Source of the DNA: Laetmonice hystrix
Lineage: Eukaryota
Reading direction: 5' to 3'
NCBI GenBank assembly: GCA_965235115.1
Contig: OZ249448.1
Coordinates: 23,684,001 to 23,748,000, forward strand
Length of the DNA stretch: 64,000 nt
Part shown: piece by piece, positions 1-8,079 of the stretch
How positions within the stretch are numbered: the stretch's first letter is position 1
How the letters are laid out: each line of letters starts with the position of its first letter
Position numbers and translations under genes: made by a program
The notes under the pieces: model-generated
What the model was told of the DNA's origin: nothing
Seen by the model: only the letters and a program-made list of their open reading frames with translations
Database searches by the model: none

Positions 1-1220
1 AAGTACAAACCGGCGAGGGCCACCGAAACGTTAACCACAGACCACTTTACTCAACTCGGGCATCGCAACTGCGACCTGTCCCGCCTACAAATGGACAAAG
101 GTCATATAAAAGGTCAACCTTTTGAGGATGAGATAAATTCTCCAGACTTCAATGTAGACTCGGAAGTCTTTTCGATTTAACATGTCTTGTCTTGTGCATG
201 CTCTCCCGAAGGTGACCTTGGAAGTGTAGGATCCGGAGGGAGAATGTGGAAGGGGTTCCACCCTCCTTTAAAATATGTTAATGCTATTTCTTTCTAGCCC
301 ATTAAATAAACAATTTGTATAAATAAATTCACTAAATTCGTTGTGCATCTTCGCACTTATCAACATTATCTCAAATGACCAGATCCCCATTAAAAGTATG
401 AACTTCTCCATTAAAATGAGTTTGGATATAGGGAAAACGGTAACATGCCATGACTTTTAACGCCACGGTCATCCTACTCCATTATCCTCGGATTCCAGAG
501 AGCTTAGCTCTCCAATCAGTTCATCATTGCTTCATATCATTACCCAAAGTATAACTATTACTTTGTTAGTGTTCATCAGGTCAACTAGTCTGTTAAACTC
601 AAAGAAAAAAGCAGCCAGAGCATTACAATGTTACCACCAAACTTTTGTTTAGTTAGGCTCGGTTTGTTATGTAAATGTAGTTTGTATACTAGCCCCCCAC
701 CTAGGTTTACCTCTGGGGAAGGTTAAACGCGATGCAGGGAATAAACCCTCGCTTACCTTGATAGGGAGTCTGCCGTGGTTCAGGATTAATTCGTGTTGAG
801 ACAGTTGTGTATTCTTACCTTAATGTCAGCCTTTCAAAGCCCGACCTAGCACCAACTTACTGCTGTCTTTTTTCGTGTAACAGATGTTCTTTCAAAACGC
901 CTTTATCTTTGTTTAAAAAATGTAGCGGTACCCTTCTTCATTTTATATCAGCCAAGACGGCTCCATATTCTCCGTGTCACTCTACAACTGACATTAGAGA
1001 AGGCAAATACATTGACCTTTCTGAAGTTAACTGAGTATTTTGACTTTGCAGACGTACAAGTCTGCCCTTTTCACTCTGTACACTGCGAGTATTCATCACT
1101 GCAGACAAAATTAAATCATTTGCTCTCATTATGTTAACAAAGTGTCTTACTGGTAGGTTATTGACTTTTATTTGAAATTCCCATATTTATGAAAAATGTC
1201 AAATGCCCACTAATTCGCAC

Positions 1221-1316
1221 ACTCATGGTATGATGGCGGGGCAGAGTTGGAAACTCATGGTATGAAGGCGGGGCAGAGTTGGAAACTCATGGTATGATGG
1301 CGGGGCAGAGTTGGAA
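1221..1316. repeat. 32-bp tandem repeat x3
   Basis: Unit actcatggtatgatggcggggcagagttggaa. Confidence 0.9.
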
Positions 1317-1364
1317 AGCCTCGTTAAGCCTGATAAACGCCCAGTGAGTATCCTAGGTGTGTGA

Positions 1365-1612
1365 TTTCTGATTGCAGCTACGTATTGAATGTGCCTTCTG
1401 ATTGCAGCTACGTATTGAGTTGCCTTCTGATTGCAGCTACGTATTGAATGTGCCTTCTGATTGCAGCTACGTATTGAATGTGCTTTCTGATTGCAGCTAC
1501 GTATTGAATGTGCCTTCTGATTGCAGCTACGTATTGAATGTGCTTTCTGATTGCAGCTACGTATTGAGTGTGCCTTCTGATTACAGCTACGTATTGAGTG
1601 TGCCTGATTGCA
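1365..1612. repeat. 30-bp minisatellite x~8
   Basis: Unit gtgccttctgattgcagctacgtattgaat; explains ORF 1402..1722. Confidence 0.92.
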
Positions 1613-3119
1613 GGTATTATTGTCTATGTACAGAGGAGGGACACATTCTCAATCACTCTGTATGTATTCTCACGCTATCAGCCACATGTATACACTCGTT
1701 GTATAGATCTTGCCTAGCGTAGGTGGTCTTCCCCGCGTACTCCAGTTTCCACCACCAGTAGAACTGACCACGAATAGACCCTGGCTGTAGGGGAAGCGTA
1801 AAATCTCAATCCATAACGGAATCCCCTCACTGTCCCTCAGCATAATCGATATTTCAGTACTTTGACATTTTTTGTGCAATCATTGATATGAGCAAAATAT
1901 GCTCGGCATTCAGTCCAATGTAGGCATCGAAAATCTCCGCTCCAAGTTCAATATAAATTAAGTAGTAAATCGAAGGTGCATTGTTTCAACTTGAACGACA
2001 AAATAAACACAGTGTAGACCTATCTATGTCTCTACTTTGAACCTTTACTATAAATTATATCGAACATAAGTGAACGATACGTAAATCGGTGAATATCTAC
2101 CACTACCGTGCAGCAATGAGCGCGTTTGGTGGTGCATGAGCGAACCCTGTCTCAGTTCAGCGATAAGAAACGCCTTTAGTTCCGATTCCTCCCACCAGGT
2201 GGCCTTGCTGCCGACCTTCTCGAAACGATCTGGCAAAAAGGCCAGAAAACCGTGACATGCATGCTTCCGTTTGGCGCTCAAAAGCTGTACAATGGGAACT
2301 TATCGTTCAACAAAAACAAAACAAAAAAGTCTAAAAAATATTCGATAAGATACTGCTTCAAAATATACACGTGAAATGTCAAGGACAATCATACTAAAAT
2401 ATGCTTAGGTCGTAAAATGTGCCTTACCCCCCCCCCCCCCCCGGAAAAAAGCCGTCATGTCGAAAAGGCTCACGGAAGAAAATGTAGTTGGACAAGTAGA
2501 GAAAGCGAGTTGGCGATGGTGGGACTCGCCACCGCTTGGTCACATCTATATGCGGTGAAAATTCGATGTCAAACCAATTTAGTCTTGGAATATTCACCAA
2601 TGGGAGAAATTATAGCATATTTTGGCCACTATGAAAAGTAGCATATATGCTTATATAGCGCCTTATCAGATTAAGTATATTAAACTCATCTAATGTTAGA
2701 TGTAAAAAAACCCGTGGCTTTAATTGTTATGTCGACACAGTGTGAGTTTATAGAGACAGAGTCACTGCACGAAGGTCAAATTTCCATATTAACTTTGTGA
2801 AAATTCCCCCCAATTCGGATGTTAAGAGAAATGGTATGGTGCAGAGGATGTTCACGCTCACCGCCCACCTCAAACGACTACACACTACCATCCCCCACAA
2901 ACGACATCCTCTCGGCTCCCAACGGCGCCACTAACCAGGAGTTTTAGAATAAATCAAACCACATTACTGCATCAAGAAAATTCTCTGGTCAAATCGGTTT
3001 TCCATTTTCCTTTTTTTCAAAGGCGGGGTACGTCCGAAGAGGAATCTCGATTTGGTGGTCAACGTTGGAAACAATAAGAGAAGGCACGTGTAACGTTACC
3101 GGTCACGGGGTCACCCTAC

Positions 3120-3229
3120 CTGTTGTACATAAGTATATCAGGGTTCCAGATCTCCTTAGAGGGGAGACGAATACTGTGAACACCCCCGTACTCTGATTCG
3201 TTCCAAGTCATCTTGTAGTCTGCCCACTC
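3120..3229 (-). CDS. nAChR subunit, exon 4 variant d
   Basis: ccttactgcag|GAG, 110 nt, donor AACAG|GTAGGG. Translates EWADYKMTWNESEYGGVHSIRLPSKEIWNPDILMYN(S). Confidence 0.93.
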
Positions 3230-3268
3230 CTGCAGTAAGGAATCACATGGGTCAGGACAGACGCCTAC

Positions 3269-3378
3269 CTGTTATACATAAGAATATCTGGGTTCCAGAT
3301 CATTTTCGACGGAAGTCGTATACTATGTATGTCTTCGTATTCCGACTCGTTCCAGCCCAGCTTGTAGTCCTTCCATTC
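3269..3378 (-). CDS. nAChR subunit, exon 4 variant c
   Basis: cttacttgcag|GAA, 110 nt, donor AACAG|GTAGGC. Translates EWKDYKLGWNESEYEDIHSIRLPSKMIWNPDILMYN(S). Confidence 0.92.
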
Positions 3379-3415
3379 CTGCAAGTAAGCATGTCTCAGT
3401 TTGGATCGAGCCTAC

Positions 3416-3525
3416 CTGTTGTACATGAGTATATCGGGTGTCCACACCAGTGTGGATGGCAGCCGTATACTATGCACGCCAGCGAACTCTGACTCGTCCC
3501 ATCCAAGTTTGTAGTCCTTCCATTC
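3416..3525 (-). CDS. nAChR subunit, exon 4 variant b
   Basis: cttggttgcag|GAA, 110 nt, donor AACAG|GTAGGC. Translates EWKDYKLGWDESEFAGVHSIRLPSTLVWTPDILMYN(S). Confidence 0.92.
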
Positions 3526-3575
3526 CTGCAACCAAGCACACGCACAGGGGGCTCAGTACACATCCCAACCCCTAC

Positions 3576-3685
3576 CTGTTGTACATAAGTATATCCGGTG
3601 TCCATACTAACGTCGAAGGCAGCCGAACGCTGCCTACGTCACCGTATTCCGTTTCGTTCCATTTCAACTTGTAATCCGTCCAGAT
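3576..3685 (-). CDS. nAChR subunit, exon 4 variant a
   Basis: Long pyrimidine tract ...gttttgtcgtttttag|ATC, 110 nt, phase 0 to 2, donor AACAG|GTAGGG. Translates IWTDYKLKWNETEYGDVGSVRLPSTLVWTPDILMYN(S), with the loop A WxPDxxxYN motif. Confidence 0.93.
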
Positions 3686-5116
3686 CTAAAAACGACAAAA
3701 CACGGTGAAACGGGCAGACGACAAAAGTAAAGCCCATTCGGCACTTTCCGTACGCCGACCTCCACACGCCCCGGGTCAATGGGACCCCCACTTCGGCTCT
3801 GGTTGAGAAGATACATTGTGTAAAGGGCTTATCAATTAAACTATGCGATTTCTGCTCATCTACATTGGCCAGCCGAGAGGCAAAACGAACTGAGAGCAAA
3901 GGAAGTATCTAGACATGGGTGGGCTCGTGTGGAACTCAGTGACGTCACATTAAACACCAGCATGGAGTCGATGGACTGAGAGCAAAACCTAATTTTGCCA
4001 CAGAATTAAAGTTGTCATAGATAAATGAGATCTGTGGGGTTAAATGTCAACCGACTAAAGGAATAAAGGAATTAGTCTACATATATAGCGAAAACATAGT
4101 ATGCCATGCACTGCAAAGAAACTACTGGAGATAAATGGTTAGCTTGGGCATGTATGTACTAGGTAGGGGTTGGGCGCAATGTTAACATTTGAAAACAATA
4201 GGCCTATTCATAATCATACAGTTATCAACAGTAATAAACTTTCAAATTCAGTAGGTCATGAAGAGGAAGTTAGACTTGATTCTGTCACAAAAATTGGCGA
4301 TCTCTTCTTCGCGATTTCTCTGTTACATTTTAAGTCTGCTGCACAGTAGGACAAGCTATGGTAAACACCTGTTTACGGGCACAAGTTTGGCGAAAAGCAA
4401 GCGAATCCGACTTTTAGTAAACAGGAAAAGTAACGTGGTGAGGACAAACCTTTTTGTGACAGTTCTCGTGGGCTTTAGAGTTTTACTGATACAAGACAAA
4501 TATTTTTCTCAATGATATATTTAAACGGTTTTCCTATTGATTTAGAGAGGAATGATTTGGCAGATTGCTGAGAATGTCAGGAGATCACAATACATAACCT
4601 GGTATCACATGTATCACATCATTTCATGTATGGCATTCGAGTGAAACTTTTGAGGATATCAGTTTTGTTCAGTCTTCAATGAGTTCAAATGGAATCTCGA
4701 CCACAAGCCCGATACAACTGACCCTGTATTAACCACACACAAAACACACAATATCAACGTTTTTCTTCCTGTTTCGTTGTAGTCCTGCCACAATGTGCTC
4801 ATGTAATCTATATAAATATGCAGTTGACCACACCCAAGCTGTTTTATTATAACGGTTAACAGACTACGTGGTGACAGAGAATACTAGATAGACTGTTAGA
4901 TGTTAGATGATAACACTTTGAGAGGTTCGAAGTGGTAAAACTGATACCGACAGTTAAATAAATAGACTGTTAGACGCATTCAGCATTATTATAATACCTT
5001 AACCATGTTAGACACAGATCGTTTTAGAAATTGTAACAGTGTACATTATGACGATCGATCTAATTCAACAATTTACTTTTCTTGGCCACTCACTAATAAT
5101 TCCTGCGTATACTCAC

Positions 5117-5161
5117 GTAGTTCAGCCACATGTTCGTATGCAGCATCTCGTTCTTTTCATC
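5117..5161 (-). CDS. nAChR subunit, exon 3 (45 nt, single copy; contains loop D Trp)
   Basis: catttccag|GATGAAAAGAACGAGATGCTGCATACGAACATGTGGCTGAACTAC|gtgagt translates to DEKNEMLHTNMWLNY. This is the canonical 45-nt phase 0-0 nAChR exon (DEKNQ..TN.WL). Confidence 0.95.
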
Positions 5162-6779: not shown

Positions 6780-6925
6780 CACGTCAATGATTTGCTGAAG
6801 AGCGATACCAAATTTGACCTCAATGGAATCCATCTCCTTGGGAACGGGACGCGAGAGTCGGTTGTAGTTTCGTCTGCCGAATATGTCATTTATGAGTCTC
6901 TCCTCGTGCGGACCCTGCAGGCTCT
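6780..6925 (-). CDS. nAChR subunit, exon 2 variant b (partial CDS)
   Basis: Pyrimidine tract, CACTAAC/GACTAAT branch-like motifs, acceptor ttcacag|AG, 146 nt, phase 1 to 0, donor GTG|GTAGGC. Translates (E)SLQGPHEERLINDIFGRRNYNRLSRPVPKEMDSIEVKFGIALQQIIDV. Confidence 0.93.
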
Positions 6926-7939: not shown

Positions 7940-8079
7940 CACGTCGATGATTTGCTGAAGGGAAATGCCGAAGTTAACCTCGACGGCGTCCGATTCCTTT
8001 TCTACTGGTCGTGCTAACTTATTGTAGCGACTGAAGATATCCTCTATAAGCCGTTCCTCGTGCTGTCCTGCTCGGGCGC
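7940..8079 (-). CDS. nAChR subunit (alpha7-like group), exon 2 variant a (partial CDS)
   Basis: Acceptor ...ttgcccacacag|GC, 140 nt, phase 1 to 0, donor GTG|GTAAGA. Translates (G)ARAGQHEERLIEDIFSRYNKLARPVEKESDAVEVNFGISLQQIIDV, the nAChR N-terminal helix to beta1 (compare Drosophila alpha6 GPHEKRLL...RPV.NESEPLEVKFGLTLQQIIDV). Confidence 0.93.

Follow-up and report, generated by a model that had tools for sequence, protein, structure and literature searches.

Among the closest described counterparts of the locus presented here are clusters in C. elegans in which the intervening intron is too short, namely egl-15 exons 5B/5A (14 nt), let-2 exons 9/10 (30 nt), bet-2, gly-5, and gly-6 (Kuroyanagi et al., 2014, PMC4165533). 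The intron limit of this species lies at ~40 nt, and clusters with intervening introns of 14-30 nt never join their exons (PMC4165533). In human, 9% of 629 clusters have a donor-to-branch distance of <50 bp (Hatje et al., 2017, PMC5740500), a range that is counted as steric interference (PMC5740500). Steric hindrance has also been described in combination with RNA structure, in Dscam exon 17 (cited in PMC6071210). The same review confines steric hindrance to pairs of exons and holds NMD unable to account for clusters with over three exons (PMC6071210). Alternative exons are known from insect nicotinic acetylcholine receptor (nAChR) genes, such as exons 3a/3b and 8a/b/c of D-alpha6 and the alternative exon 4 of D-alpha4 (PMC1919356, PMC8505678). 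The published account of the nAChR expansion in lophotrochozoans (PMC6896357) contains zero occurrences of the term "alternative splicing."

Here we analyze a window of 64,000 nt from the annelid Laetmonice hystrix (contig OZ249448.1, positions 23,684,001 to 23,748,000), which carries four consecutive copies of one nAChR exon. We regard it as probable that these form a mutually exclusive cluster, in which exclusivity would arise from spacers below the minimal intron size acting together with the reading frame and NMD.

Organization of the exon 4 array

The array occupies window positions 3685-3120 on the minus strand of an alpha-type nicotinic receptor gene and consists of four intact, homologous 110-nt exons. 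Its features are given below in the order of transcription, with their counterparts in the relative L034 (ENA assembly).

3576..3685, minus strand: exon 4a, 110 nt; ortholog L034:5890-5999
3526..3575, minus strand: spacer a-b, 50 nt, GTAGG...TTGCAG, CTGAG with A at +23; 63 nt in L034
3416..3525, minus strand: exon 4b, 110 nt; ortholog L034:6063-6172, 86% amino-acid identity
3379..3415, minus strand: spacer b-c, 37 nt, CTGAG with A at +20; 41 nt in L034, without a CTGA motif
3269..3378, minus strand: exon 4c, 110 nt; ortholog L034:6214-6323, 86% amino-acid identity
3230..3268, minus strand: spacer c-d, 39 nt, CTGAC with A at +17; 53 nt in L034
3120..3229, minus strand: exon 4d, 110 nt; ortholog L034:6377-6486, 80% amino-acid identity

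The cassette measures 566 nt in total, including 440 nt of exon and 126 nt of spacer, and a period of 147-149 nt was detected across it with Tandem Repeats Finder. Every copy has one open frame, with AG directly before and GTAGG directly after, and all four share a common phase and the encoded pattern (I/E)W.DYK..W.E.E...V.S.RLPS...W.PDILMYN, the protein being IWTDYKLKWNETEYGDVGSVRLPSTLVWTPDILMYN and three variants of it. Nucleotide identity between pairs of copies ranges from 76 to 84 of the 110 positions (69-76%); exon 4a is the most diverged copy and has the best polypyrimidine tract upstream, and the tracts at 4b-4d are weak. Exons 4a-4d thereby display the hallmarks of mutually exclusive exons, which are equal length, phase, homology, and intact splice sites.

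Unbroken DNA contigs from two public runs of one sample cover window positions 2900-3900, with no difference inside 3120-3685 and seven in 435 flanking nt. An assembly artefact was rejected, given that the DNA contigs span the cluster without differences. The seven flank variants among contigs of the one sample lie at 2996, 3002, 3011, 3068, 3818, 3833, and 3865. Public sequencing data matched by a largely intronic stretch of 6 kb consisted of three DNA assemblies, all from one sample.

The surrounding exons and introns are as follows.

7940..8079, minus strand: exon 2a, 140 nt
6780..6925, minus strand: exon 2b, 146 nt, second alternative exon 2
5117..5161, minus strand: exon 3, 45 nt, DEKNEMLHTNMWLNY, single copy
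3686..5116, minus strand: intron 3, 1431 nt, preceding the cluster; neither a docking candidate nor a conserved block
1..3119, minus strand: intron between exons 4d and 5, 3126 nt, of which the final 7 nt fall outside the window, before its start
G000:C18:23683993-23683740: exon 5, just past the window start; Neur_chan_LBD match

Assembly of one exon 2, exon 3, one exon 4, and exons 5 to 9 of the neighboring DNA results in 458-460 open codons that include a Cys-loop C-x13-C CTINIRWFPFDDQLC, four membrane segments, and the alpha-type loop C sequence YECCPEPY, and homologs carry PF02931. A profile search of the genome with Neur_chan_LBD (PF02931) matches the four exon 4 copies and exon 5, amid more than 150 LBD exon matches genome-wide (Pfam search). 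Judged by this predicted protein, the gene is an alpha-type nicotinic acetylcholine receptor subunit, a Cys-loop channel, in which exon 4 encodes the stretch from just past loop D to loop A (W.PDILMYN). None of the database proteins resembling exon 5, which were searched for spliced exon 4-exon 5 peptides, came from this gene, the best match being 90% identical.

Exons 2a and 2b are both 3n+2 in length, lie 1014 nt apart, and each give an open frame. The pair is present in L034 and also in the more distant L035, which indicates that exon 2 was duplicated before the exon 4 array arose, and a spacer of such length cannot act through a size limit.

Further repeats were noted downstream in the same gene, outside the window. 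Just past the TM2 exon (L033:7956-8084, that is G000:C18:23681956-23682084), a 29-nt unit in 4.4 copies consists of exon-end bases and a GTAAGT donor, resulting in a row of decoy donors. Past the TM3 exon (L033:7415-7502), a 42-nt unit with the end of the exon, CTGTGG|GTATGT, is present in 2.1 copies, and this duplication creates a second and a third donor-like site in the intron. The intron between TM1 and TM2 contains a G-rich minisatellite (L033:8560-8837) with a period of ~48 nt in 4.5 copies.

Conservation of the array in relatives

In L034, whose exon 5 protein is 90% identical, the gene has the same layout, with exon 2 in two copies, exon 3 in one, and exon 4 in four copies of 110 nt whose order is kept. 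Only exons can be aligned between the two species, and the introns are saturated and unalignable, pointing to an old split between L034 and Laetmonice hystrix. Since four copies occupy the equivalent place in so diverged a relative, the array is far beyond what chance would give. Differences between orthologous exon 4 copies fall at third codon positions in 75 of 114 cases, a bias that indicates purifying selection on each copy.

These data bear on the reading that the array has a single genuine exon, for example 4a, and that the other copies are unused relics. The weak polypyrimidine tracts of 4b-4d speak in its favor, but in both species, deeply diverged as they are, all four copies have stayed open, bordered by GT-AG, and 110 nt long to the nucleotide, their changes are mostly third-position, and no variant occurs in 440 exonic nt vs. 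seven in 435 flanking nt, so that we hold this reading to be very improbable. A set of pseudo-exons was likewise rejected, with four copies kept in L034 under third-position changes and no variant in the cluster.

A single exon 4 was found in L035, L067, L068/L069, and L071/L072, which are other relatives or paralogs (the count leaves out L036, which comes without upstream DNA), and the four-fold array is therefore limited to one lineage. We also noticed a database gene model from another organism (P0012, 580 aa) that reads in one frame through a tandem pair of exon-4-like segments (...WLPDIVLYNKYEWNDELLRWN...WLPDIVLYNNADDY); here the gene predictor has probably joined the copies of a duplicated alternative exon.

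Spacer length and the intron size of the genome

All three spacers have GT-AG borders. The sequence-only reading of this DNA had described them as micro-introns of 50, 37, and 39 nt, each with a branch-like CTGA(G/C) whose A lies 23, 20, or 17 nt from the donor; the introns match letter for letter and the motifs are at the positions claimed. The three spacers are, though, copies of one another and not independent occurrences of CTGA(G/C), a GTGAC motif is also found after exon 4d without a nearby acceptor, and in L034 the motif is kept in spacer a-b, loosely in c-d, and is absent from b-c. We hence treat the CTGA(G/C) motifs as plausible, putative branch sites. The steric argument is independent of them, because all adenosines of the spacers are within ~30-40 nt of the donor.

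The same reading had named the minimum intron length of the species as a check on this argument. We sampled ~117 introns of ~22 genes from two families, dynein and CCT chaperonin, by exon-by-exon Pfam matches. Exons matching dynein AAA_6 delimit 41 introns with exact GT-AG borders, the shortest being 89, 90, 109, 110, and 112 nt. For dynein DHC_N2 exons, match coordinates gave length estimates for 50 introns, the smallest being 87 nt, and five further introns, of 93-150 nt, were read through within single matches. The CCT chaperonin genes gave ~26 introns with a minimum of ~116 nt, again estimated from match coordinates. The shortest intron in the sample is thus 87-90 nt, where 76 of the 117 introns rest on HMM match ends, and none of the ~117 dynein and CCT introns is <85 nt, which limits introns this short to a share of roughly ≤2.6%. 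An extra stretch of 69 nt in one dynein match was rejected as a short intron, as it is an open protein insertion. The nAChR paralogs (L001-L030) have fused exons in many cases and too few introns for a size sample. Among the dynein genes, two heavy-chain exons (G000:C6:15670526-15670636 and G000:C6:15671728-15671838) both match AAA_6 positions 81-117; lying ~1.1 kb apart, they are candidate alternative exons of the AAA1 ATP-binding module.

Against this sample, the spacers reach ≤57% of the shortest intron (37-50 vs. 87-90 nt) and lie below the range handled in the dynein and CCT genes. The earlier claim that neighboring exons cannot be joined holds insofar as spacers of less than 60% of the shortest sampled intron make a size or steric block plausible, but the identity of the branch sites on which it was built is unproven. 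For the junctions a-b, b-c, and c-d, we infer such a block with good support. The spacers of L034 (63/41/53 nt) are also under the lower edge of the sample, and two of them, at 63 and 53 nt, come closer to what could be spliced.

Reading frame and premature stops

Given the length of exon 4, 110 nt or 3n+2, the downstream frame is preserved by length only with one or with four copies (440 nt). All 16 combinations of the exon 4 copies were translated. Any one copy results in an open frame in the translation of the assembled gene, and full skipping leads to a stop in exon 5. Each of the six doubles and four triples has a stop within the cluster or in exon 5, and even the product a+b+c+d stops within the cluster, since translation enters its second exon in a shifted, stop-containing frame. 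Retention of a spacer gives an immediate stop after the exon 4 copy (AGG TAG). In the 11 multiple-exon products and the full skip, the stops lie 500-813 nt upstream of the last exon junction, so that both sequence features of NMD substrates, an exon length other than 3n and an early stop before the last junction, are present, and mRNAs with several copies or none are probably degraded by NMD.

Several statements of the sequence-only reading can be set against these translations. The non-adjacent pairs ac, ad, and bd and the full skip are indeed frameshifted and have early stops, from which NMD would follow. Its "in-frame triple" of 330 nt was mistaken, for a frame that needs 3n+2 is not kept by 330 nt. 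Its central prediction, that only single-exon products survive, agrees with the early stop of every other combination, but the steric block it invoked is not needed: the frame alone leaves only single-exon mRNAs productive, and a block on neighbors would merely save waste. Such a block would prevent the adjacent doubles, all triples, and the quadruple, with a-c, a-d, b-d, and the full skip left to NMD.

One has therefore to weigh an account by frame and NMD alone, according to which the spacers are short because the duplicated unit was short, are spliced at a low rate, and yield adjacent doubles that are degraded. Each multiple product already has a premature stop, and L034 tolerates spacers of 53 and 63 nt. 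Moreover, the five C. elegans clusters with too short introns are all 3n, where NMD cannot help, whereas exon 4 is 3n+2 (PMC4165533). On the other side, none of the ~117 sampled introns is <87 nt, the spacers of 37-39 nt are at or below even the C. elegans limit of ~40 nt (PMC4165533), and spacers have stayed at ≤63 nt in both lineages, where intron sequence is saturated elsewhere. We consider frame and NMD alone a fairly improbable explanation.

Docking sites and RNA structure

Competing RNA structures, or bound repressors and activators, might instead make the choice, spacer size being incidental; clusters with more than two exons are usually explained in this way (PMC6071210), and as the non-adjacent doubles are sterically unblocked, something may limit them. 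Docking and selector sites were searched for between both flanking introns and the three spacers in both species (RNAduplex), and the energies were like those of shuffled spacers. One marginal docking-like site in the downstream intron reached -26.2 vs. a shuffled minimum of -24.6 kcal/mol, but it has no counterpart in L034, where the value of -20.7 is inside the control range. Short-word blastn between the orthologous introns of the two species found no conserved block above the shuffled level. Folding of the cluster gave inconsistent z-scores (z = -2.1 here vs. +0.7 in L034), and we claim no structure. A conserved docking site with a selector for each exon was thus found in the introns and spacers of neither species, and selectors would hardly fit into spacers of 37-50 nt. 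Taken together, the duplex scans, intron conservation, and folds support, as absence of evidence, the earlier suggestion that the array works without a docking site. Short or non-conserved pairings may occur all the same, yet we deem it distinctly unlikely that RNA structure or bound factors are the main agent of exclusivity.

Origin and a possible mechanism

In their 5′ halves, the spacers are similar to the beginning of the intron that follows exon 4d (GTAGG..TGAC/GCC..TG), and in their 3′ halves to the end of intron 3. These resemblances fit repeated duplication of a unit of ~150-160 nt, comprising the exon and ~20-25 nt of each flank. The same likeness to flanking intron ends, together with the GTGAC after exon 4d, also speaks for the account by frame and NMD alone. 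An origin by such duplication would yield micro-spacers, with immediate exclusivity as a by-product. The spacers are short in both lineages (50/37/39 vs. 63/41/53 nt); they may have been kept short by selection against spacers that can be spliced or, equally, because nearly every base is a splice signal.

For the combined action of spacer size and frame, which we prefer, the following scenario can be drawn. Duplication of the ~150-160-nt unit would have left chimeric spacers of 37-50 nt that hold a donor, a possible branch site, an acceptor, and little else. In spacers so far below the smallest sampled intron, any internal branch point would be within ~30-40 nt of the donor, and U1 on one donor could presumably not coexist with U2 on the next branch site, so that neighbors would not be joined. 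Transcripts with 0, 2, 3, or 4 copies would meet a premature stop, as predicted by their sequence, and be non-productive, NMD being their probable fate. The choice of the single exon itself would probably depend on weak acceptors and trans-acting factors. A further-reaching version, which we advance only tentatively, sees a self-policing four-exon array without any docking-selector structure, where sub-minimal spacers forbid neighbors, stops kill the rest, and the shortness of the spacers is itself under selection.

Comparison with known systems

Exon 4 shares with the short-intron clusters of C. elegans its tandem homologous exons and intervening introns below the species minimum, and with the NMD-dependent clusters of the same worm the non-3n exon length that makes multiple inclusion and skipping NMD substrates. 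The C. elegans short-intron clusters are all 3n, however, and the two mechanisms remain separate there, whereas both coincide here on one four-exon array. Unlike the C. elegans clusters, the annelid array, as predicted from sequence, has three consecutive sub-minimal spacers. In alpha-tropomyosin exons 2/3 and the human clusters, a short donor-to-branch distance likewise blocks joining and a frameshift removes joined products, but these are pairs, and their intron may be of considerable length with the branch point far away, in contrast to four exons separated by introns of 37-50 nt.

Insect nAChR genes provide a parallel of another kind, in which exons for the ligand-binding domain have been duplicated in tandem within the shared receptor family, as with the alternative exon 4 of D-alpha4. 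The annelid four-fold duplication is independent of these and restricted to its lineage. Furthermore, exons 3a and 3b of Bombyx alpha6 can both be included in frame, which is impossible for annelid exon 4. With two exon 2 and four exon 4 copies, the sequence predicts that one gene would give rise to at least eight extracellular-domain variants, which differ in the loop that connects loops D and A and in the residues preceding loop A.

The docking-selector clusters of Dscam exon 6, 14-3-3zeta, Mhc, and srp resemble the array in that one of more than two tandem-duplicated exons is chosen, and differ from it in the conserved docking site and complementary selectors, which we did not find here. 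Short introns and NMD are both known from C. elegans, human, and Dscam, with genome-wide surveys of both mechanisms for the worm and for human, and the present case is a new example and not a new mechanism. What is specific to it, as read from the genome, is the presence of four exons with three sub-minimal spacers, the meeting of both mechanisms on one cluster, and a product of all four exons that is predicted to be stopped although its length is compatible with the frame. The internal stops of this product run against the generalization that NMD has its limit at three exons and steric hindrance acts on pairs only (PMC6071210), and a self-policing array, if true, would contradict these statements of the review. 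Should RNA bear out the predictions, the cassette would be a convenient minigene for studying the minimal intron and donor-to-branch distance of a lophotrochozoan spliceosome, and its 566 nt would represent a case where the two simplest mechanisms police four exons, in the kind of cluster that reviews assign to RNA structure.
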